The notes under the pieces were generated by a model that was given only the letters and a program-made list of their open reading frames with translations, was not told the origin of the DNA and searched no databases. From Octopus bimaculoides (taxonomy: Eukaryota): a DNA stretch of 40,275 nucleotides. Positions 925 to 36,412 of this stretch are shown here, piece by piece. Location of the stretch: positions 149,743,869 through 149,784,143 of the forward strand of contig NC_068983.1 in NCBI RefSeq assembly GCF_001194135.2, in the 5' to 3' direction. A program made the position numbers and the translations under genes. Each line of letters begins with the position of its first letter. Position 1 is the stretch's first letter.

Positions 925-937
925 ATTTTTTTTCCAG
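925..937 (+). promoter_or_regulatory. 3' splice acceptor 16 nt upstream of the TLR ATG (implies an upstream non-coding exon)
   Basis: Polypyrimidine tract plus CAG (ttttttttccag, AG at 936-937), then aataatacaaaagaagATG. Confidence 0.6.
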
Positions 938-953
938 AATAATACAAAAGAAG

Positions 954-3900
954 ATGGAAGCAGGTGTTTGTTTAAAAATCCAGCTACTTTGCAGTTTATT
1001 AAGCACTTGCTTTTTCAAACTCATTCTTTCAAATCAAATTGAAAATAATACTGTTCTGTGTAAATATGATTTTAGAAAACTATCTGAAACCAGACTCTTT
1101 AGTATCGATGGAAAACGCCTGGAGACAACAGCTCGCGCATTCAGTGATATCAAGACAACTTCCTCAGAAAACGAATGTGTGATTGAATTAAAACATTTAA
1201 ATATACCACGTATCGAAATACGTATTTTGATCTATTACTTTAAGTGTTCTGATGAGCTGACTGTTAGGCTGGACACGACGGATGTTGAGACCATGCCACG
1301 CAATATTTTATATTTACAATTTCAAAGTTGTTTAATGTCCCAAGAAGATGTTGGTAAACTAGAAAGTCTTTATGATTTGCGTGTGTTAACTTATTTTAAG
1401 ACTATACCATCATCTGCTATATGGTCCGGGAGTAACGAAACTGACAATGTAAACGGTATTGATAATGTTGTTTCATACAGTATAATAGGGGACAGAAATT
1501 ACTCTTCCACTTTACCATGGGTATTAACAGCGAACAAAACTTATCCAACTATAGCAGAAATTACTCTCGACGGTATCGGCTTAACCGAACTTCCTGATGA
1601 AATGCGAATTAGATTTCCAAATTTGCAATCACTAGAAATACCCAATAATAAACTTATTGAAATTCCCAAGTTTCCATATACTGAGAGGACTTACAAACTT
1701 CCACTCGGGCTTTCTAGAACGCCATTTATGCAAAACCATTATGCAGACGTTTTCGGAATTAAAGTGAAACCAAACTACTTCAGAAGAATATTAAATTTGT
1801 ACGGCAATCAAATTACAAATCTACCCGATAACTGCACTAGTGGATCTTTACAAATGCTATCACTGGAAGAAAATGGCGTAGTTAATATATCTGACCATGC
1901 TTTTTCAAATATGTACGGTTTAGATACACTTACCTTGGCGAATAACTTACTTATACAGATCGGGGAAAAGCAATTCAGCTATTGCAATGATCTTCAGAGT
2001 TTGAATCTAAAATTTAACAAAATTTCCTGGATTCATTCAAGAGCTTTCAGACATAATAAAAATCTTTTGAAATTGGATTTATCCAATAACAAGCTTGTTT
2101 CATTGGAGGAAGGAATATTTACAGCATTAGATAATATGAAAACACTGAATTTGGAATATAATCAGATTCAAAACCTTTCTTGCAAGAGTCTACCACTGTC
2201 TTCTATTAAGTTAGAGGAAATAAATTTACGCAACAACAATCTTGAAACCTTACCTATATGTTTCTTTTTGATACGTAGGTTGAAACAAGTCGATCTAAGT
2301 TTTAACCAGATAGCGATGGGAAAAGTATCAAATCTACTTGGGTTGATTAACTCATCAGAGCTCATTCACAGTGTTGTCTATTCAGCAAGTTCATCAGTTG
2401 ATTTATTCCGAAAGCCAGAAGAACGGCGATTAATTGATCTCTCTTATAATCAAATCCACCGATTAGATTTCAGTAATTTCACTGAATCTAACCGTCATAC
2501 CATGTTGCTAATTTTATTAAATTTTGAACTTCGTTTCACAGGTAATTTAATTGAATGTGATTGTCATTTACTTCCACTTTTAGACTTCTTCATTACTCAC
2601 AGAGAAAAACATTTTGATGGAAGTGAATATTTTTACCATAAATGGAAATGTGATTCGCCAAGCGAATTTAAAAATACACCTATTCTATCTCTTAAAAAAG
2701 AACAGCTTTACTGCTCTGAAGCGATGCCTCATTGTCCGACTAATTGCATGTGTTACCGTCGTTTAGTACAGAAAACAGTTATTGTTGATTGCAGATATAG
2801 AAAAATCACAGTCTTTCCTCTTACTATGCCAGACGGTAAACTTGAAGTATGGCTTCAGTTTAATAACATAACTAAACTTGTTAACAGGCCGTATTTATCT
2901 CAGATTACACATCTTAATCTTACAAAAAACAGTATTACTTCATTGAATTACACTGTGATGAGAAATATGGTAAACCTCAAACAAATGATTCTGGATTGGA
3001 ATCTTTTGACTACATTACCTAAAGGAATACAAAACGTTCAATTTGAAGTCTTAAGTATCAATCATAATCATTTTTTTTGCGATTGCACAAATATATGGCT
3101 GAAAAAATGGTTACAGAAATCAAGGGAATCAATTTTGAATTGGCGAAGAATTGTATGTAATACTGTAGGAGATAAAGTTCTGGATATTGTAGTGGTTCCC
3201 AACGACAAATTTATCTGTAATAATCCGAATGATAATTTCAAGAAGACATTAACGTTAGGGCTATCCCTTGCTCTAGCTATTCTAATTTTACTTGTTTGCC
3301 TTTTCTTACTCATTCACTATTGGTTGGAAATAAAAGTTATACTGTATGTCTACTTAAATATTCACCCATTTGACAGTAATCCCGCCAAAATAGATGATGG
3401 TTTAGAACCTATTGATACGCTTATAGTGTATTCTAAATCACTTTCTGAGTGGGCTACCGAAAACATTATTAAGAATCTCGAAAAGTTGAGTTTCAACGTC
3501 TTAGATACGAACCGTGATCTCCTGATTGGTATGAGTTTTCAGGAGAACATGCGCGTAGCCGTGTCCCGAAGCAAATACTGTATCATTGTTCTCTCTGAAG
3601 AAAGCATCGAAGACCCACTGGTACAAATAGCTCTTTCGTATACTTATGAAAAAACACTCTATGGGAGACCAACATATATTATACTTATCTTACACAATAT
3701 TAAAAGAAATGTAGTTAAAAATAAAAATCTTAAAAAATACTTGTACAGTGGCCGTTTTATAAAATCTACAGACCACATGATGGAAAAGAAATTATTGTAT
3801 ATGCTAACCGGTAGAAACTTATATAACAATCATGATATCCCATTACGCCGTAGAAAGTCTTACAAAGAATTTTTTCCGGAAGTTTTGGGCTCTGCCAATA

Positions 3901-4373
3901 CTCTGAATGAACAAAAGAAGTATGATATTTTCATTAGTTACCCTGACCAGACTTATCAATTTGCTACTGGACCTTTATTATCCACTTTACAATCACGTGG
4001 CTATTCCATCTGCTTACCAGATCGAGACTTTGTCGTCGGCTCAGCTAAAGAAGAAAACATATTGAGGGCCATTAAAAGCTCAGTTAGAACCTTGATTGTT
4101 ATCACTAAATCTCATGTGGAAGATGAATGGCAACTATTTACTCTAAGAACAGCAGTCCAGTGTTCTCTTAAGAAACCTTTCAATTATTTATTGTGTATTT
4201 TAGATGGTATTGTAGATAAGAGCAAACTCGATCTTGAGACGCAGGCTTATGTAACGTCTCATGTTGTCATTGACAAAGACGATCCACTGTTATGGAAGAA
4301 ATTGTTTCGTTCAATCCCACCAGCAAGGACAATTGAGAACTCCACATCTGCATTTGACTCAAGAAAATCATGA
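954..4373 (+). CDS. Toll-like receptor, multi-cysteine-cluster (Toll/protostome type), with two tandem TIR domains; single coding exon, 1139 aa
   Basis: Hydrophobic signal peptide (~aa 1-26); repeated LxxLxLxxNxL LRRs; LRRCT (NLIECDC...WKC...LYC); LRRNT (CPTNCMC...VDC); 3-4 more LRRs; second LRRCT (NHFFCDC...W...VC...C); TM helix ~3249-3323 (LTLGLSLALAILILLVCLFLLIHYW); TIR1 ~3411-3812 (IDTLIVYS...RDLLIG...SKYCIIVLS); TIR2 ~3921-4320 (YDIFISY...DRDFVVG...SVRTLIVIT...EW...LWKKL). Confidence 0.96.
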   Translation: MEAGVCLKIQLLCSLLSTCFFKLILSNQIENNTVLCKYDFRKLSETRLFSIDGKRLETTARAFSDIKTTSSENECVIELKHLNIPRIEIRILIYYFKCSDELTVRLDTTDVETMPRNILYLQFQSCLMSQEDVGKLESLYDLRVLTYFKTIPSSAIWSGSNETDNVNGIDNVVSYSIIGDRNYSSTLPWVLTANKTYPTIAEITLDGIGLTELPDEMRIRFPNLQSLEIPNNKLIEIPKFPYTERTYKLPLGLSRTPFMQNHYADVFGIKVKPNYFRRILNLYGNQITNLPDNCTSGSLQMLSLEENGVVNISDHAFSNMYGLDTLTLANNLLIQIGEKQFSYCNDLQSLNLKFNKISWIHSRAFRHNKNLLKLDLSNNKLVSLEEGIFTALDNMKTLNLEYNQIQNLSCKSLPLSSIKLEEINLRNNNLETLPICFFLIRRLKQVDLSFNQIAMGKVSNLLGLINSSELIHSVVYSASSSVDLFRKPEERRLIDLSYNQIHRLDFSNFTESNRHTMLLILLNFELRFTGNLIECDCHLLPLLDFFITHREKHFDGSEYFYHKWKCDSPSEFKNTPILSLKKEQLYCSEAMPHCPTNCMCYRRLVQKTVIVDCRYRKITVFPLTMPDGKLEVWLQFNNITKLVNRPYLSQITHLNLTKNSITSLNYTVMRNMVNLKQMILDWNLLTTLPKGIQNVQFEVLSINHNHFFCDCTNIWLKKWLQKSRESILNWRRIVCNTVGDKVLDIVVVPNDKFICNNPNDNFKKTLTLGLSLALAILILLVCLFLLIHYWLEIKVILYVYLNIHPFDSNPAKIDDGLEPIDTLIVYSKSLSEWATENIIKNLEKLSFNVLDTNRDLLIGMSFQENMRVAVSRSKYCIIVLSEESIEDPLVQIALSYTYEKTLYGRPTYIILILHNIKRNVVKNKNLKKYLYSGRFIKSTDHMMEKKLLYMLTGRNLYNNHDIPLRRRKSYKEFFPEVLGSANTLNEQKKYDIFISYPDQTYQFATGPLLSTLQSRGYSICLPDRDFVVGSAKEENILRAIKSSVRTLIVITKSHVEDEWQLFTLRTAVQCSLKKPFNYLLCILDGIVDKSKLDLETQAYVTSHVVIDKDDPLLWKKLFRSIPPARTIENSTSAFDSRKS

Positions 4374-4488: not shown

Positions 4489-5885
4489 GGATCTTTTCCT
4501 TTTCATGGGCAACTCGATTAATTAATTTTCTTTAACTAAACACTTTGAAACTTCGGATACTGGTAGAATGTGTCATATAGAACATCTTTTACTCTTAGCG
4601 TTATTGAGAAAAGTTTCTATTTACGAAGTTATTTCGTGTTAAAGTTGTCGTATTTCGGTAATTTCAACCAATCAATGACGTGTATTCAGCTGAATAAAAT
4701 TACTGCTGTTGTATGTCAACAACAACTTCCGGCGGCGTATATTTCGTTTGTCACTTATTTATGACATTTCATCTCAGTTACATTCGTATGAATAAACGAA
4801 GCACGTTTACTTCATGACACCACTAAATCGTTCGTGCATTTCCACTGCTTTTTAGGATTTTTTCCTGTTTTTCAGCTGCTATTTTCGGAAAGACTTCCTC
4901 CCTTCCTCGCCCCTTTTTTCTTACTCTTTTACTCTTTTACTTGTTTCAGTCATTTGAATGCGGCCATGCTGGAGCACCGTCTTTAGTCGAGCAAATCGAC
5001 CCCAGGACTTATTCTTTGTAAGCCTAGTACTTATTCTATCGGTCTCTTTTGCCGAACCGCTAAGTTACAGGGACGTAAACACACCAGCATCGGTTGTCAA
5101 GCGATGTTGGGGGGGGGACAAACACACACACACACACACACACACANNNNNNNNNNNNNNNNNNNNNNNNNNNNNNNNNNNNNNNNNNNNNNNNNNNNNN
5201 NNNNNNNNNNNNNNNNNNNNNNNNNNNNNNNNNNNNNNNNNNNNNNNNNNNNNNNNNNNNNNNNNNNNNNNNNNNNNNNNNNNNNNNNNNNNNNNNNNNN
5301 NNNNNNNNNNNNNNNNNNNNNNNNNNNNNNNNNNNNNNNNNNNNNNNNNNNNNNNNNNNNNNNNNNNNNNNNNNNNNNNNNNNNNNNNNNNNNNNNNNNN
5401 NNNNNNNNNNNNNNNNNNNNNNNNNNNNNNNNNNNNNNNNNNNNNNNNNNNNNNNNNNNNNNNNNNNNNNNNNNNNNNNNNNNNNNNNNNNNNNNNNNNC
5501 TCCAATTTCTTCATTTTTCACTTTTTTCCGTAACTCTAACCCTAAAACCCCAATCCTAACCCTAACCCTAAAACCCTAAAGCTAAAACCAGTACAAACGC
5601 ACGAACGATGTCATAAATACCAGTGACAAACGAAATATGCACCGCCGATAGTTGTTGACATACAACAGCAGTAATTTTATTTAGCTGAATACACGTCATT
5701 GATTGGTTGAAATTACCGAAATACGACAACTTTAACACGAAATAACTTCGTAAATAGAAACTTTTCTCAATAACGCTAAGAGTAAAAGATGTTCTATATG
5801 ACACATTCTACCAGTATCCGAAGTTTCAAAGTGTTTAGTTAAAGAAAATTAATTAATCGAGTTGCCCATGAAAAGGAAAAGATCC
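4489..5885. mobile_element. Non-autonomous foldback DNA transposon with ~300-bp terminal inverted repeats, internal (CCCTAA)-like repeats, an internal SINE insertion and a gap; superfamily unassigned
   Basis: Arms begin ggatcttttccttttcatgggcaac (4489) and end gttgcccatgaaaaggaaaagatcc (5885). The ORF track shows the same peptide on opposite strands (4570+ and 5804-). The left arm has a ~60-bp insertion (4768-4828). Telomere-like taaccc repeats at 5531-5580. No TSD recognised. Confidence 0.85.
4921..5146 (-). mobile_element. Main tRNA-derived SINE, 3' part, runs into gap
   Basis: (ttttactc)n tail, ttgtttcagtcatttga..gcggccatgctggagcaccg...gccgaaccgctaagttac...gtcaagcgatg then (CA)n; near-identical to 15607-15911 and 29612-30000. 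Confidence 0.9.
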
Positions 5886-12699: not shown

Positions 12700-13402
12700 C
12701 AGTCTTTTATTTATATAATTCAACAATAGAATGTGTGGGAAGAGGGTTGAAAGCGTGATTCACATTGTTAGTGCTTGTGAAAGTCTTGCGCAGAAAGAGT
12801 ACAAGCGCAGACACGACAAGGTAGCCCAAGACCTTCCACTGGCTACTCTGCCGGAAGTATGGTTACGAGGTAACGTGTGCTTGGTACCAACATACACTGG
12901 AAAAGGTAATGGACGAGAAAGGGAAGGCAAACATTCTCTGGGATTTTGGCTTCTAGACAGACAAGGTATTAGAGCTCCGAAGGCCGGATATAGTAACCTT
13001 TTGGAGGGACAAACAAGAGTGCCTAATAATTGTCGTGGCAGTGCCTGGAGATCAACATACTATCATGAAAGAAAGAGAAAAGACTGATAAATATGGAGAC
13101 TTGAGAACTGAGATCGTTAAGATGTAGCAGCTACGAGAGTCAAGCATAAAGGTTATCCCTATTGTCATCGGAGCATTGGGTTCAATACCACCCAATCTGA
13201 AAAAAAAACATCTGAAAACTTTAGAAATACCCTACAATCTAGGTGTATTGCAAAAGTCAGCATTACTTGCAACTGCCCGCATATTGCGTAAAGTACTGTC
13301 TGTCTGAGGTCCTTGTTGTGACTTGATAAACAGTACAAACCATCGGTAGACACAATATCTTCAATCAACAACCTCATGATATTGTATACTGTGCGACGTC
13401 TA
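12700..13402 (+). mobile_element. 3' end of a Dong/R4-clade LINE (CCHC finger plus restriction-like endonuclease), 5'-truncated
   Basis: RMCGKRVESVIHIVSAC, YKRRHDKVA, WY.H, ILWDF, RPDIV (12981-12995), EKTDKY..L, PIVIGALGS, QKSALLATARILRKVL*, stop at 13305-13307, then short 3' UTR into (AAT)n. Confidence 0.85.
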
Positions 13403-13409
13403 TAATAAC

Positions 13410-13486
<77 letters not shown>

Positions 13487-13509
13487 TGATGATGATGATG
13501 ATGATAATG

Positions 13510-13582
<73 letters not shown>

Positions 13583-13610
13583 TAATAATAATAATAATAA
13601 TTATAATAAT
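13403..13610. repeat. (AAT)n microsatellite with a (GAT)n interruption
   Basis: Direct reading of sequence. Confidence 0.98.
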
Positions 13611-13745
13611 AAAGATCTGAACAGATGGATAGAGGAAATAGGCATAAAACCCAGTTTAGCACAGCTGCAGAAAACAGTGTTATTAGGGACAGCTAGGATA
13701 CTTAGGAGGTTTCTTGGCATCTAAGGTTAATTGTACTTCGATGTT
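13611..13745 (+). mobile_element. Very short 3' end of a second Dong/R4-clade LINE
   Basis: KDLNRWIEEIGIKPSLAQLQKTVLLGTARILRRFLGI* (stop 13722-13724), homologous to the C-terminus at 13200-13307; starts exactly at the end of (AAT)n. Confidence 0.8.
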
Positions 13746-15911: not shown

Positions 15912-16601
15912 NNNNNNNNNNNNNNNNNNNNNNNNNNNNNNNNNNNNNNNNNNNNNNNNNNNNNNNNNNNNNNNNNNNNNNNNNNNNNNNNNNNNNNNNN
16001 NNNNNNNNNNNNNNNNNNNNNNNNNNNNNNNNNNNNNNNNNNNNNNNNNNNNNNNNNNNNNNNNNNNNNNNNNNNNNNNNNNNNNNNNNNNNNNNNNNNN
16101 NNNNNNNNNNNNNNNNNNNNNNNNNNNNNNNNNNNNNNNNNNNNNNNNNNNNNNNNNNNNNNNNNNNNNNNNNNNNNNNNNNNNNNNNNNNNNNNNNNNN
16201 NNNNNNNNNNNNNNNNNNNNNNNNNNNNNNNNNNNNNNNNNNNNNNNNNNNNNNNNNNNNNNNNNNNNNNNNNNNNNNNNNNNNNNNNNNNNNNNNNNNN
16301 NNNNNNNNNNNNNNNNNNNNNNNNNNNNNNNNNNNNNNNNNNNNNNNNNNNNNNNNNNNNNNNNNNNNNNNNNNNNNNNNNNNNNNNNNNNNNNNNNNNN
16401 NNNNNNNNNNNNNNNNNNNNNNNNNNNNNNNNNNNNNNNNNNNNNNNNNNNNNNNNNNNNNNNNNNNNNNNNNNNNNNNNNNNNNNNNNNNNNNNNNNNN
16501 NNNNNNNNNNNNNNNNNNNNNNNNNNNNNNNNNNNNNNNNNNNNNNNNNNNNNNNNNNNNNNNNNNNNNNNNNNNNNNNNNNNNNNNNNNNNNNNNNNNN
16601 N

Positions 16602-17757: not shown

Positions 17758-17818
<61 letters not shown>

Positions 17819-17823
17819 GTCTA

Positions 17824-17902
<79 letters not shown>

Positions 17903-17910
17903 GTCTATCT
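17758..17910. repeat. (ATCT)n/(GTCT)n microsatellite next to gap
   Basis: Direct reading; a similar (ATCT)n tract lies at ~19540-19615. Confidence 0.95.
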
Positions 17911-18613
17911 NNNNNNNNNNNNNNNNNNNNNNNNNNNNNNNNNNNNNNNNNNNNNNNNNNNNNNNNNNNNNNNNNNNNNNNNNNNNNNNNNNNNNNNNNN
18001 NNNNNNNNNNNNNNNNNNNNNNNNNNNNNNNNNNNNNNNNNNNNNNNNNNNNNNNNNNNNNNNNNNNNNNNNNNNNNNNNNNNNNNNNNNNNNNNNNNNN
18101 NNNNNNNNNNNNNNNNNNNNNNNNNNNNNNNNNNNNNNNNNNNNNNNNNNNNNNNNNNNNNNNNNNNNNNNNNNNNNNNNNNNNNNNNNNNNNNNNNNNN
18201 NNNNNNNNNNNNNNNNNNNNNNNNNNNNNNNNNNNNNNNNNNNNNNNNNNNNNNNNNNNNNNNNNNNNNNNNNNNNNNNNNNNNNNNNNNNNNNNNNNNN
18301 NNNNNNNNNNNNNNNNNNNNNNNNNNNNNNNNNNNNNNNNNNNNNNNNNNNNNNNNNNNNNNNNNNNNNNNNNNNNNNNNNNNNNNNNNNNNNNNNNNNN
18401 NNNNNNNNNNNNNNNNNNNNNNNNNNNNNNNNNNNNNNNNNNNNNNNNNNNNNNNNNNNNNNNNNNNNNNNNNNNNNNNNNNNNNNNNNNNNNNNNNNNN
18501 NNNNNNNNNNNNNNNNNNNNNNNNNNNNNNNNNNNNNNNNNNNNNNNNNNNNNNNNNNNNNNNNNNNNNNNNNNNNNNNNNNNNNNNNNNNNNNNNNNNN
18601 NNNNNNNNNNNNN

Positions 18614-19609: not shown

Positions 19610-19879
19610 CTATCTCTTTCTATCCCCCTCTCTCTCGATATATATANNNNNNNNNNNNNNNNNNNNNNNNNNNNNNNNNNNNNNNNNNNNNNNNNNNNNN
19701 NNNNNNNNNNNNNNNNNNNNNNNNNNNNNNNNNNNNNNNNNNNNNNNNNNNNNNNNNNNNNNNNNNNNNNNNNNNNNNNNNNNNNNNNNNNNNNNNNNNN
19801 NNNNNNNNNNNNNNNNNNNNNNNNNNNNNNNNNNNATATATATATATATATATAAATGTGTGTATATATTAAGGGGTAT

Positions 19880-25300: not shown

Positions 25301-26497
25301 TGCGTTGAAGAAACTGTCAAGAGCCATTTTTGCTGCTTGTATTTCAGTTGGAATACCTGTCCTAATTTCCCCTTCTTATTTATCACTAACTCTCCTTTTA
25401 ATCTAATTATTTTTATTGCCAGCATGTGATTAGTGCTGTATTTCATTGATCTTGGAAAGTTGAGTTGATCTCGGTTGGATTTCAGCTCAGAATCTAAAGA
25501 GCAGGAAGAATTGACATTGGGCATTTTGTTCGAAGCTTTAACGTTTCTACCAATCTATATTGCCTTTGGGCTTCCAATTTAGACATAAAACTGCAATTTT
25601 TTGATGGAGAGAAGGCGTTAATCAATTATATCGACTCCAATACACGACTGGTACTTTATTTTATCGATCTCCAGAAGAATGAAAACCAAAGTTAATCTCG
25701 GCGGAATTTGAACTCGGAACGTAAAGTGGTGAAAGAAATGCTGCAAAACATTTTTCTGATACTTAAAAAATTCTACCAACCTACACTCTTATAATTGTGG
25801 TTGCTTTTAATATAAGGCATACGGCAAGATTTTTGGTGAAGGTTGGGGCGATTTGGGGTAGTCAATTATATCGATCCTCTGTATTTGACTGCTTCTTAAT
25901 CTTTTCAACAACTGAAAGATGAAAGCTAAGTTAACTTTGGTAGGATTTATCTAAGAGCGTAAAGAACAGGAACAAATACCAAAAGGAATTTTATCTGACA
26001 TTCTGATATTTTTGCGCCAAGATGTCTTATATTGGATCTGACAAAAATATTCTTGAACATACAATAACGTAGCAAGACAGTCGTTATATGTCTAGTCGTC
26101 TAATTTCAGTTCAATAGGAAAAAACCTCTGTGGTACTCATATGAAGCTTTACGTGTTTTAGAAAGTGACAATACAAAAATGCTATGGGACTTTAGCCAAC
26201 AGACAGATCGCTAAACGTCATATAACAAACATATTTTGTTACAGTACCATCACGTCTGGTACATAATCGTATTGAAAAGGACACACACACACACACACAC
26301 ACACACACGGTAGTATCATGAGTTAAAATTATAAAAAAAACCTGAATATACAGTTATATATCTAAGNNNNNNNNNNGAAAGGCAGACAGGTACAGAAACT
26401 AAGAGAGAGAAAGCGAGAGAGATGAACTGACAGACAGACTGATGATGGAGATACTGAGAGATACAGCGAGCGAGACATACGGACAGATAGAGGTATT

Positions 26498-28395: not shown

Positions 28396-29611
28396 GTAAG
28401 CTGGGCCCAACAGCTTAAACTTACGATCACTAACAACATGATGTAGTAAAACCGAGCGAAACAGAATTTATTTAACTAGCTACCCCTTATAACACCACCT
28501 TTACAGGTTATGACCCCAGTAAGCTTCATGCTTTTCTTGGAAATGTAGTATATTTTTAGCTACAATAGCGACAACATGGATTTCTTCCATCTTGCTCTGT
28601 TAAAGTATTTCAGTAAAATTATATTAATTTGTCCGACTGATTAAAATTCTATTTATCTGTGCAGCTGATGATAACCGTGCATTTAAATTGATGCAATGAT
28701 TATATTGTTTAATTAGATGGTGCCGCTTGAAACAATCGTTCTACATCACTTCTTGATATCCTGTTGCTTATTTTGATTTTATTCACCTTACTTCGAGCTG
28801 TGCGGATAATACCGCGCTGACCTGGTGCTTCAACTTAAGTACCTAATTGAACTGAATCTCAATTATTTCTTTTATATANNNNNNNNNNNNNNNNNNNNNN
28901 NNNNNNNNNNNNNNNNNNNNNNNNNNNNNNNNNNNNNNNNNNNNNNNNNNNNNNNNNNNNNNNNNNNNNNNNNNNNNNNNNNNNNNNNNNNNNNNNNNNN
29001 NNNNNNNNNNNNNNNNNNNNNNNNNNNNNNNNNNNNNNNNNNNNNNNNNNNNNNNNNNNNNNNNNNNNNNNNNNNNNNNNNNNNNNNNNNNNNNNNNNNN
29101 NNNNNNNNNNNNNNNNNNNNNNNNNNNNNNNNNNNNNNNNNNNNNNNNNNNNNNNNNNNNNNNNNNNNNNNNNNNNNNNNNNNNNNNNNNNNNNNNNNNN
29201 NNNNNNNNNNNNNNNNNNNNNNNNNNNNNNNNNNNNNNNNNNNNNNNNNNNNNNNNNNNNNNNNNNNNNNNNNNNNNNNNNNNNNNNNNNNNNNNNNNNN
29301 NNNNNNNNNNNNNNNNNNNNNNNNNNNNNNNNNNNNNNNNNNNNNNNNNNNNNNNNNNNNNNNNNNNNNNNNNNNNNNNNNNNNNNNNNNNNNNNNNNNN
29401 NNNNNNNNNNNNNNNNNNNNNNNNNNNNNNNNNNNNNNNNNNNNNNNNNNNNNNNNNNNNNNNNNNNNNNNNNNNNNNNNNNNNNNNNNNNNNNNNNNNN
29501 NNNNNNNNNNNNNNNNNNNNNNNNNNNNNTGGGCCCAGCTTACAGTGAGAGCGCATGGCTTAGTAGTTTGGGTGTTGCACTCACAATCTGGTGATCGTAA
29601 TTTCAATTCCT

Positions 29612-30015: not shown

Positions 30016-31496
30016 TCAGGTCATCCCATAAGTTCTGTCCAATTTTACTTTTTTTAAAATTGAATGAAATTTAAAAGTATTTTAGAATGTCTAATAGAAT
30101 TAAAAATTATTTTTATGCATTTGTGTACATTTAAACTAATTAAGTATTATTTTACCGAATAATAGAATTAAAATTTCTTTGATTAAAACCCTTTCTAACA
30201 TGGAAGTATCCAAAGAGCATTTATGGCAGATAATGCTTTATGAATACAAAAAAAGGAAACTCTGCAGCCGAAGGGACTCGAAACATACCCTCAGTTTATG
30301 GGAAAGAATGCTTGAATGAAAGAACTTGCAGAAGATGGTTTGCAAAATTCAGAAGTGGAGATTTCAGCCTTGAAGATGAAGATCGAACNNNNNNNNNNNN
30401 NNNNNNNNNNNNNNNNNNNNNNNNNNNNNNNNNNNNNNNNNNNNNNNNNNNNNNNNNNNNNNNNNNNNNNNNNNNNNNNNNNNNNNNNNNNNNNNNNNNN
30501 NNNNNNNNNNNNNNNNNNNNNNNNNNNNNNNNNNNNNNNNNNNNNNNNNNNNNNNNNNNNNNNNNNNNNNNNNNNNNNNNNNNNNNNNNNNNNNNNNNNN
30601 NNNNNNNNNNNNNNNNNNNNNNNNNNNNNNNNNNNNNNNNNNNNNNNNNNNNNNNNNNNNNNNNNNNNNNNNNNNNNNNNNNNNNNNNNNNNNNNNNNNN
30701 NNNNNNNNNNNNNNNNNNNNNNNNNNNNNNNNNNNNNNNNNNNNNNNNNNNNNNNNNNNNNNNNNNNNNNNNNNNNNNNNNNNNNNNNNNNNNNNNNNNN
30801 NNNNNNNNNNNNNNNNNNNNNNNNNNNNNNNNNNNNNNNNNNNNNNNNNNNNNNNNNNNNNNNNNNNNNNNNNNNNNNNNNNNNNNNNNNNNNNNNNNNN
30901 NNNNNNNNNNNNNNNNNNNNNNNNNNNNNNNNNNNNNNNNNNNNNNNNNNNNNNNNNNNNNNNNNNNNNNNNNNNNNNNNNNNNNNNNNNNNNNNNNNNN
31001 NNNNNNNNNNNNNNNNNNNNNNNNNNNNNNNNNNNNNNNNNNNNNNNNNNNNNNNNNNNNNNNNNNNNNNNNNNNNNNNNNNNNNNNNNNNNNNNNNNNN
31101 NNNNNNNNNNNNNNNNNNNNNNNCAGGACAATGCGTGACCCCACACTGCAAAGATCACATCACAGAAGATCAAAGAGCTTGGTTGAGAAAAAATTCCTCA
31201 TCCACCTTATTCTCCCGACCTTGCTCCTTCAGACTACCATTTGTTTCGTAGTTTACAGAATCATTTGGAGGACATAACTTTCGCAAGCCAGGAGGAGGTC
31301 GAAACTGACGTTTCAGAGTTTTTCGCTTTGAAATCAAGAGTTTTACATTGATGGGATTAAAAAGCATGTAAATAGATGGAAGGAAGTCATAGATAATCAG
31401 GGAAAGGGCATTGATGATTAAATTTCAATTAAATATAACATTTGATCACTTGTTTTCTTTATTCAAAATTCGGACAGAACTTATGGGATGATCTAA
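30016..31496 (+). mobile_element. Mariner element with both TIRs; transposase pseudogene (ATG 30200, stop 31419-31421); centre in gap
   Basis: TA|tcaggtcatcccataagttctgtcc ... ggacagaacttatgggatgatctaa|TA; MEVSKEHLWQIMLYEYKK(+1 frameshift)GNSAAE...CRRWFAKFRSGDFSLEDE; QDNA*PH, G*EKIPHPPYSPDLAPSDYHLF, RWKEVIDNQG. Confidence 0.95.
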
Positions 31497-36145: not shown

Positions 36146-36412
36146 NNNNNNNNNNNNNNNNNNNNNNNNNNNNNNNNNNNNNNNNNNNNNNNNNNNNNNN
36201 NNNNNNNNNNNNNNNNNNNNNNNNNNNNNNNNNNNNNNNNNNNNNNNNNNNNNNNNNNNNNNNNNNNNNNNNNNNNNNNNNNNNNNNNNNNNNNNNNNNN
36301 NNNNNNNNNNNNNNNNNNNNNNNNNNNNNNNNNNNNNNNNNNNNNNNNNNNNNNNNNNNNNNNNNNNNNNNNNNNNNNNNNNNNNNNNNNNNNNNNNNNN
36401 NNNNNNNNNNNN

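Follow-up and report, generated by a model that had tools for sequence, protein, structure and literature searches.

A single open reading frame on the forward strand of the Octopus bimaculoides DNA analysed here (the window, 40,275 nt in length) raises the question of whether one Toll-like receptor (TLR) chain carries two intracellular TIR domains, whether such an architecture is new, and what a second TIR would contribute to signaling. On translation the frame was found to run without stop or frameshift over 1139 aa, with an in-frame stop 93 nt upstream of the ATG, and its parts were assigned as follows.

954..4373, + strand: twin-TIR multiple-cysteine-cluster (mcc, P-type) Toll-like receptor, complete intronless CDS (single ORF, 1139 aa plus stop)
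954..1031, + strand: putative signal peptide, ~aa 1-26, MEAGVCLKIQLLCSLLSTCFFKLILS (hydrophobic N-terminus seen in the translation)
1032..3248, + strand: LRR ectodomain with 12 N-glycosylation sequons and three cysteine clusters (Pfam LRR matches; Cys and NxS/T positions)
2556-2714, + strand: LRRCT1, C535/537/566/587 (cysteine positions)
2733-2792, + strand: LRRNT, C594/598/600/613, CPTNCMC (cysteine positions)
3078-3218, + strand: LRRCT2, C709/711/735/755 (cysteine positions)
3249..3326, + strand: TM helix, ~aa 766-791, LTLGLSLALAILILLVCLFLLIHYWL (Kyte-Doolittle)
3327..3410, + strand: juxtamembrane segment with the family motif (E)IKVxLYxYxxIHPFD (conservation and model)
3411..3812, + strand: TIR1, membrane-proximal and divergent, aa 820-953 (Pfam; pLDDT ~80-94; clade; dN/dS 0.35-0.70)
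3813..3920, + strand: linker joining the two TIRs, aa 954-989, basic and in part disordered (AlphaFold pLDDT)
3921..4319, + strand: TIR2, distal and canonical, aa 990-1122 (Pfam; pLDDT ~90-95; dN/dS 0.24-0.35)
4320..4373, + strand: short, disordered C-terminal tail, aa 1123-1139, plus stop codon (pLDDT <50)

The ectodomain was recognized by Pfam (LRR_8 5.2e-31, LRR_4 2.3e-12, LRR_5 1.8e-11) and is of the mcc (P-type, Drosophila-Toll-like) kind, in which an LRRNT comes after an internal LRRCT and a second LRRCT lies next to the membrane. The hydrophobic start of the translation points to a probable N-terminal signal peptide. Just one Kyte-Doolittle window above 1.8 was present in the protein, at ~aa 766-791 between the LRRs and the TIRs, and in the AlphaFold model the helix runs on from the TM into the juxtamembrane segment, where conservation of K6, V7, F18 and D19 (intracellular-segment numbering) is 90% or higher in 16 twin-TIR proteins. 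The protein is a type-I membrane receptor with an mcc LRR ectodomain, one TM and two tandem cytoplasmic TIRs.

Pfam scanning of the whole protein returned TIR_2 (1.6e-21) and TIR (3.2e-16), each in two stretches. When the segments were scanned alone, 3411-3860 gave TIR_2 at 6.8e-11 (43.2 bits) and TIR at 2.4e-5 (24.6 bits), and 3861-4370 gave TIR at 1.3e-11 and TIR_2 at 8e-11; both domains thus scored above the gathering cut-offs (TIR_2, 28 bits; TIR, 21.3 bits) singly. A gap-free alignment of TIR1 with TIR2 spans 128 residues (23% identity, E = 6e-11). AlphaFold modelled two full beta-alpha TIR folds, the first from strand A at aa 820 to the end of its last helix at aa 951, the second from aa 990 to 1120. 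In the linker, aa 954-969 were modelled as disordered (pLDDT <50) and aa 970-984 as short helices of low confidence; the C-terminal tail is the least conserved region. The best Foldseek matches to the individual TIRs were TIR crystal structures of TLR1, TLR2, TLR6 and TLR10, and the best PDB match to TIR2 by sequence was the TLR1 TIR (4.6e-9). These vertebrate TLR1/2/6/10 TIRs (1FYV, 1FYW, 4OM7, 2J67) are the closest structural and sequence matches to each domain, but they come from scc (V-type) receptors, which have only one TIR. The original prediction of an intact TLR whose intracellular part has two TIRs in tandem is borne out by the ORF, by Pfam on the separate segments and by AlphaFold, and the extents that it had assigned to the two domains and the ~36-aa linker were right nearly to the residue.

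It was considered whether the twin form might not be expressed as such, the gene model being an artefact, the transcript ending before TIR2, or one domain being a decaying duplicate. Two ~3.9-kb Logan contigs (L003 and L004), which may derive from RNA or from DNA, each contain the full CDS. Against it, four species, the most distant at 52% identity, have an unbroken ORF in which TIR1, TIR2 and the linker are free of stops (the orthologous CDSs L001, L002 and L003 are likewise uninterrupted), and bivalve members of the family have been cloned as cDNAs carrying both TIRs (PMC4929906). In addition, dN/dS is below 1 for both TIRs, and both are better conserved than the ectodomain (61% identity for TIR1, 62% for TIR2 and 48% for the ectodomain, relative to the 52%-identical homolog P0003). 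We regard this explanation as very improbable. By these substitution rates both TIRs are under purifying selection, with TIR1 under weaker constraint than TIR2, since its dN/dS reaches 0.70 in one octopus pair. The same architecture was found intact in three further cephalopod-type sequences and in ~50 cluster representatives from other molluscs; given these relatives, it is far past chance.

Contig L003 skips window positions 4497-5881. Since a perfect 235-nt inverted repeat borders the skipped segment, which resembles a foldback/MITE insertion, L003 is no proof of splicing, and its reading as a spliced transcript was rejected. Elsewhere in the 40,275-nt window, no second TLR-like sequence and no tRNA were found. 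The notion that this locus encodes the sole Toll-type (mcc) receptor of the octopus was also rejected, as six mcc TLRs are given for O. bimaculoides (Orus-Alcalde 2021).

The closest relative was the O. sinensis RefSeq entry 'protein toll-like' (P0001, chromosome CM016861.1; 1140 aa as against 1139), which is 92% identical and 100% colinear. It is a direct ortholog, intronless and with two TIRs, and its syntenic flanks share 94% nucleotide identity; it differs in coming from a separate Octopus species (dS ~0.08) and in carrying only a generic name in the annotation. A 2024 survey of O. sinensis TLRs by Chen et al. reportedly describes 14 OsTLRs, of which this protein may be one.

More distant homologs of the intracellular region were collected by exhaustive HMMER search, in which the TM-TIR1-linker-TIR2 region aligned in one stretch to ~50 representatives. 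Word-index searches were weaker, with one match for the region alone and three for a 16-sequence profile; they missed even the O. sinensis ortholog. The relatives came from bivalves, gastropods and chitons (Sinanodonta, Mytilus, Pinctada, Ostrea, Crassostrea, Mya, Ylistrum, Argopecten, Mercenaria, Haliotis, Gigantopelta, Nucella, Littorina, Pomacea and Liolophura), and for Sinanodonta, Mytilus, Pinctada, Ostrea and others a single alignment covered query residues 1-336. The bivalve twin-TIR Tolls share the mcc ectodomain with two LRRCTs, the one TM and the order TIR1-linker-TIR2; their intracellular region is colinear with that of the octopus protein at ~30-37% identity (E down to 7.5e-59, in the unionid Sinanodonta), and each of their TIRs is orthologous to its octopus counterpart. 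The octopus protein differs from the rest of the family in its cephalopod lineage, in a BB-loop Val in TIR2 where Pro is mostly found, and in its linker, which at 36 aa exceeds the mode of ~30 aa (lengths between phmmer envelopes peak at 29-31 aa).

This family has been in print from 2014 to 2023 under the names HcToll-2, Toll-2, twin-TIR and SPP-2TIR (PMC4929906, PMC5845394, PMC10279657). In Saco et al. 2023, the twin-TIR group is reported as conserved at mollusc level, cephalopods implicitly included, and the group described there as missing from cephalopods is the single-TIR SPP, not the twin-TIR one. The locus is the octopus ortholog of this family. The original prediction was right to state that bivalve twin-TIR TLRs had been reported (e.g. 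PMC4929906), and the hope that the architecture might be new in a cephalopod fails, both because the family is mollusc-wide and published and because of the 92%-identical ortholog in RefSeq. The twin-TIR observation is correct but already known; it is an ordinary finding because the design is an old, published feature of mollusc Tolls.

The two TIRs were also placed separately, as had been proposed at the outset. Of 85 twin proteins, 83 had an N-terminal TIR closest to octopus TIR1 and a C-terminal TIR closest to TIR2, and all single-TIR relatives (114/114) were nearer to TIR2 than to TIR1. A neighbor-joining tree of 134 domains, built on Poisson distance, placed 52/52 TIR1s in one bipartition, which was recovered exactly in 153/200 bootstraps and at a Jaccard index of at least 0.9 in 200/200. 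TIR1s thus form one clade and TIR2 is the domain resembling that of single-TIR Tolls. Because all TIR1s fall in one clade, the duplication is older than the split of cephalopods, bivalves, gastropods and chitons; by this phylogeny TIR1 arose once, at the root of Mollusca or close to it, chitons included.

In TIR2, box 1 (YDIFISY), the BB loop (RDFVVG), alpha-C (DEWQLFT) and box 3 (PLLWKKL) were all identified. In TIR1, the corresponding elements are IDTLIVYS for box 1, RDLLIG for the BB loop and DPLVQIA for alpha-C, in which Trp and Glu are gone, and the box-3 Trp is absent; the TIR1 domains have conserved motifs of their own (GfS.qeNi and KllY.MP). The BB-loop Gly is present in 52/52 TIR1s, 51/52 TIR2s and 30/30 single-TIR domains. 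At the classical BB-loop Pro position, the Val of octopus TIR2 is shared by 22/30 single-TIR mcc Tolls, and Pro occupies it in 32/52 twin-TIR TIR2s. Judged by these motifs, TIR2 is a canonical box 1/2/3 Toll TIR, and TIR1 is a divergent yet constrained copy. Single-TIR mcc Tolls (mollusc Toll-I/SPP, Drosophila Toll and arthropod relatives) share the ectodomain organisation, and their TIR resembles octopus TIR2 (33% mean identity; box 1, RDFxVG BB loop, box 3).

In NAD+-cleaving TIRs, the catalytic Glu lies four residues past the alpha-C Trp (SARM1 E642, RUN1 E100). The Trp is retained in octopus TIR2 and the Glu replaced by Thr, with Ala in the same column of TIR1. Across the family this Glu was found in 0/52 TIR1s and 0/52 TIR2s, as against 27/30 single-TIR Tolls, which keep the W-x-x-x-E motif and differ from the twin-TIR family in lacking its extra membrane-proximal TIR. 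An NADase role was accordingly rejected for either TIR; with the NADase-type Glu missing from both, they would serve as scaffolds, not enzymes.

How the two TIRs are arranged bears on what the second one may do. With a 16-sequence family alignment, AlphaFold gave a pLDDT of 82 and a pTM of 0.79, although a pTM from 16 sequences can be over-confident; with a 5-sequence alignment the pTM was 0.44 and no fixed domain arrangement was obtained. The pre-formed intramolecular TIR pair that had been proposed therefore has some support from the model built on the family alignment, and the model built on five sequences does not reproduce it. The pTM of 0.79 would imply a fixed TIR1-TIR2 pair, which is a modestly new result. 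No solved chain matching the two-TIR arrangement was found by Foldseek (TMq <= 0.35).

The comparison of TIR1-only, TIR2-only and full-length constructs suggested by the original prediction had already been published for a bivalve member. In S2 cells with an antimicrobial peptide (AMP) reporter, full-length Hcu_Toll-2-2 gave more output than the TIR-2-only construct, which in turn gave more than the TIR-1-only construct, and the twin receptor exceeded the single-TIR Hcu_Toll-I (PMC4929906). This mussel assay relied on overexpressing the receptors in insect cells, a heterologous system. The ranking agrees with the proposal that a second TIR lowers the signaling threshold or strengthens output.

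As the best overall explanation, we consider it likely that the locus encodes a mollusc twin-TIR Toll in which TIR1 acts through valency and scaffolding. Ligand would dimerise the ectodomains and bring two TIR1-TIR2 modules, that is, four TIRs, together. TIR2 would be the chief surface nucleating MyD88 TIR assembly, and TIR1, probably fixed in orientation against TIR2, would supply a TIR-TIR contact surface and valency, through which output to NF-kB and antimicrobial effectors would be stronger than that of a single-TIR Toll.

The same intramolecular arrangement could be read in the opposite sense, with TIR1 as an autoinhibitory pseudo-TIR that binds TIR2 in cis and masks its MyD88 surface until ligand-driven dimerisation frees it. 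The confident pTM of 0.79 is compatible with such masking, as are the degenerate box 1 and box 3 of TIR1 and the loss of its alpha-C Trp, which might be expected of a regulatory copy. However, removal of TIR-1 from the mussel receptor lowered reporter output and TIR-1 alone kept some activity (PMC4929906), and the invariant BB-loop Gly and conserved RD of TIR1 suggest that productive TIR contacts persist. Autoinhibition, which the original prediction had also raised, is disfavoured by the ranking of the mussel constructs and is unlikely.

Slightly less likely still is a third suggestion of the original prediction, that the two TIRs recruit two partners for two outputs, for example MyD88 by TIR2 and another adaptor from the expanded mollusc TIR-adaptor set by TIR1. 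The separate and ancient TIR1 clade, its own motifs and the purifying selection on it would fit such a division, and additional interaction sites are a subject of speculation in the tandem-TIR paper (PMC4929906); the fixed pair predicted by AlphaFold instead favours one composite surface over two independent docking sites.

Within the valency and scaffold reading, a bolder version is possible but doubtful: TIR1 and TIR2 may form a rigid, pre-assembled heterodimer that serves as a built-in adaptor or nucleation seed, the receptor dimer being a ready four-TIR platform, and the family-wide loss of the alpha-C Glu from both copies and the tightly peaked ~30-aa linker may be adaptations to the cis interface. 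No tandem-TIR chain is known to have a solved structure, so that this arrangement, if true, would amount to a novel way of nucleating TIR signalosomes.

For the field, little is changed by finding this ancestral mollusc twin-TIR Toll in an octopus, as published orthogroup analyses had already implied its presence. The useful additions are the single origin of TIR1, the loss of the NADase-type Glu from both TIRs and the module of TIR1 and TIR2 in fixed orientation that structure prediction suggests. Should such a module exist, twin-TIR Tolls would lend themselves to relating TIR valency and pre-organisation to the threshold of MyD88 signalosome nucleation, and the modest number of TLRs in the octopus would make it a simpler background than bivalves for such studies.

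The single long ORF in the window is preceded by an in-frame stop 93 nt upstream of the ATG and encodes a Toll-like receptor (TLR) in which Pfam, run on the whole protein, matched LRR families and two stretches each of TIR (PF01582) and TIR_2 (PF13676). The original prediction had claimed two tandem TIR domains on one intact TLR at window 3411-4320; this interval was split into two halves, each Pfam-scanned alone, and all TIR and TIR_2 scores exceeded the curated cut-offs. The TM helix was the sole one in a Kyte-Doolittle scan of the TLR, and a putative N-terminal signal peptide was assigned by eye.

Window 954..4373 (+): TLR ORF, 1139 aa
Window 3411-3860: TIR1 (membrane-proximal) half; Pfam TIR_2 6.8e-11, TIR 2.4e-5
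Window 3861-4370: TIR2 (distal) half; Pfam TIR 1.3e-11, TIR_2 8e-11
C535/537/566/587: ectodomain cysteines, LRRCT
C594/598/600/613 (CPTNCMC): ectodomain cysteines, LRRNT
C709/711/735/755: ectodomain cysteines, second LRRCT
~aa 766-791: TM helix

By its cysteine pattern, in the order LRRCT-LRRNT ... LRRCT, the ectodomain is of the multiple-cysteine-cluster type (mcc; P-type, Toll-like). In the AlphaFold models of aa 789-1139, each TIR region (aa 820-951 and aa 990-1120) forms a complete beta-alpha TIR fold of five strands, with a disordered stretch separating the two, and the top PDB matches in Foldseek were the TIR domains of TLR1, TLR2, TLR6 and TLR10. An ungapped alignment of TIR1 with TIR2 spans 128 residues (23% identity, E = 6e-11). 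On these results the tandem architecture was confirmed, and its coordinates were right. Just after the TM, a juxtamembrane motif, KV(L/I)xYxYxG(I/L)HPFD (window 3327-3374), is nearly invariant in the family alignment, whose twin-TIR TLRs reach from chitons to octopus. At window 926-937, 16 nt before the start codon, a polypyrimidine run leads into CAG; the element is conserved in an Octopus sp. contig and resembles a 3' splice acceptor, which points to a non-coding 5' exon that would lie upstream of it, possibly beyond the window.

The closest database match was the Octopus sinensis RefSeq 'protein toll-like' (92% identity, 1140 aa, full coverage), which is intronless on chromosome CM016861.1 and whose flanks match the window at 94% identity, starting 819 nt before the start codon and reaching 529 nt past the stop. 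Two more relatives of equal length with two TIRs were found, one 87% identical (P0002; Logan contigs from several SRA runs) and one 52% identical (P0003; intronless, on an ENA assembly). An exhaustive HMMER search with the 351 intracellular residues returned 2277 hits, and ~50 cluster representatives aligned unbroken over the juxtamembrane segment, TIR1, linker and TIR2. Twin-TIR representatives with source names were molluscs in every case.

Bivalves: Sinanodonta, Mytilus, Pinctada, Ostrea, Crassostrea, Mya, Ylistrum, Argopecten, Mercenaria
Gastropods: Haliotis, Gigantopelta, Nucella, Littorina ('Toll-like receptor 9.1/9.2'), Pomacea
Chiton: Liolophura sinensis, two genes

The gene showed all sequence-level features of the family and is an ordinary ortholog of it, so its existence and architecture were already known, and the novelty that had been raised for the architecture falls away. 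Tandem-TIR Tolls were described in 2014 from Hyriopsis cumingii (Ren et al., as cited in PMC5845394); a 2016 survey of them covered 29 molluscs (PMC4929906), and the name 'twin-TIR' was given to those of Crassostrea gigas (Gerdol 2017, as cited in PMC5845394 and PMC6836662); Saco et al. 2023 (PMC10279657) reported SPP-2TIR, the same family, conserved at the mollusc level, the group missing in cephalopods being single-TIR SPP and not SPP-2TIR. For O. sinensis, PMC12521104 cites a survey of TLRs across the genome (Chen et al. 2024). Within the literature library searched, Saco 2023 was the only paper to combine 'two TIR domains' with cephalopods, and functional work on a cephalopod twin-TIR member did not turn up. 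In Cao et al., gastropods yielded no complete tandem-TIR Toll. The representatives recovered here include full twin-TIR proteins from a chiton and from gastropods of five genera, in line with the orthogroup analysis published later. Orus-Alcalde 2021 (PMC8609888 Table 1) counted 6 mcc-type TLRs in O. bimaculoides and Saco 2023 recorded single-TIR mcc (SPP) as missing in cephalopods; the two studies sort cephalopod TLRs differently.

All retrieved proteins were searched with phmmer, using octopus TIR1 and octopus TIR2 as individual queries. In 83/85 adjacent-TIR proteins the N-terminal domain scored best with TIR1 and the C-terminal with TIR2, and TIR2 outscored TIR1 in all single-TIR proteins (114/114). 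In a distance-based neighbour-joining tree (52 TIR1, 52 TIR2 and 30 single-TIR domains; 139 columns), one bipartition held every TIR1 (153/200 exact bootstraps, 200/200 at Jaccard >= 0.9), TIR2 domains fell among single-TIR Tolls, and the four cephalopod-type sequences grouped in both the TIR1 (200/200) and TIR2 (199/200) clades. The phylogeny of each TIR that had been proposed places octopus TIR1 with all the other TIR1s sampled and TIR2 among single-TIR Tolls. The phmmer assignments and the single TIR1 bipartition show that TIR1 is the 'extra' domain and arose once, before the divergence of cephalopods, bivalves, gastropods and chitons; Cao et al. proposed TIR1 as the extra domain for bivalves, in agreement.

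The window lies on draft scaffold, as it holds eight N gaps, and most long 'ORFs' beyond the TLR gene were rejected as artefacts running through gaps or microsatellites. Searches of the window for tRNA genes and a second TLR-like sequence found neither.

5147-5499, 15912-16601, 17911-18613, 19647-19835, 26367-26376, 28879-29529, 30389-31123, 36146-36412: N gaps
4489-4723 and 5651-5885: perfect inverted repeat (235 nt, 100% complementary) flanking gap 5147-5499, starting 116 nt past the TLR stop codon
12193-12582 (+): ORF with a weak Clip-domain match (CLIP_1 E = 5.7e-4, 20.2 bits, below the cut-off of 26; probably chance)
13402-13612: microsatellite (ATA)x70
17758-17910: microsatellite (TATC)x38
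30240-30386 (+): N-terminal Mos1/mariner-type transposase fragment (Pfam HTH_48, E = 1e-14), truncated by gap 30389-31123

Elsewhere the window holds many simple repeats, CA/TA among them. Of the 235-nt inverted repeat, O. sinensis has homologous inverted copies, and the entire ~1.39-kb segment is absent from L003, an Octopus sp. Logan contig with the full CDS; it looks like a foldback/MITE-type insertion polymorphic between species or, should L003 be a transcript, alternatively an intron in the 3'UTR.

The CDS had zero stops or frameshifts across all four species compared. Pairwise dN/dS among three close octopus sequences was 0.35-0.70 for TIR1, 0.24-0.35 for TIR2 and 0.30-0.53 for the ectodomain, the short-region values being based on few substitutions; the comparison with O. 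sinensis gave 3.3 for the TM/juxtamembrane segment, which was set aside as noise (51 codons). Together with identity to the 52% homolog (TIR1 61%, TIR2 62%, ectodomain 48%), these values indicate that selection maintains both TIRs, TIR2 somewhat more strictly.

Motifs in the two octopus TIRs
Box 1: TIR2 YDIFISY; TIR1 IDTLIVYS
BB loop: TIR2 RDFVVG; TIR1 RDLLIG
Alpha-C: TIR2 DEWQLFT; TIR1 DPLVQIA, Trp lost
Box 3: TIR2 PLLWKKL; TIR1 without the box-3 Trp

The BB-loop Gly is invariant family-wide (52/52 TIR1, 51/52 TIR2, 30/30 single-TIR). Octopus TIR2 has Val at the classical BB-loop proline position, like the majority of single-TIR mcc Tolls (22/30). In NADase TIRs the position four residues after the alpha-C Trp carries the catalytic Glu (SARM1 E642, RUN1 E100); Glu stands there in 27/30 single-TIR Tolls, in 0/52 TIR1 (mostly Ala) and in 0/52 TIR2 (mostly Thr, Ile or Val). 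Lacking this Glu, both TIRs are predicted to be non-enzymatic scaffolds, and its loss is a synapomorphy of the twin-TIR family.

AlphaFold with a 5-sequence alignment gave pTM 0.44, roughly what a chain of 351 residues can reach with two ~140-residue domains that are well folded but placed independently of each other; with a 16-sequence twin-TIR alignment, mean pLDDT was 82 and pTM 0.79, with disorder only at aa 954-969 and the C-terminal tail. As pTM 0.79 requires low inter-domain predicted error, the model suggests a defined TIR1-TIR2 arrangement, and this predicted arrangement is the new result. The pre-formed intramolecular TIR pair originally envisaged finds some support in this prediction. 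Linker length in the family is sharply peaked (29-31 residues between phmmer envelopes), and in Foldseek no solved chain covered both TIRs of the model (TMq <= 0.35).

The TIR1-only, TIR2-only and full-length reporter assay that had been proposed is already published for a unionid mussel member: Hcu_Toll-2-2, overexpressed in S2 cells, activated an AMP reporter more than single-TIR Hcu_Toll-I, in the order full length > TIR-2-only > TIR-1-only (PMC4929906). Autoinhibition by the extra TIR1, another of the earlier suggestions, is disfavoured, as full length exceeded TIR-2-only in those truncations. The two TIRs might alternatively recruit two different adaptors. In the mechanism best supported by these results, ligand-induced dimerisation would display two TIR1-TIR2 modules, TIR2 would be the main MyD88-nucleating surface, and TIR1 would contribute valency or surface and raise output. 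The one line worth pursuing is the rigid TIR1-TIR2 module predicted here, together with the alpha-C glutamate loss common to both TIRs.
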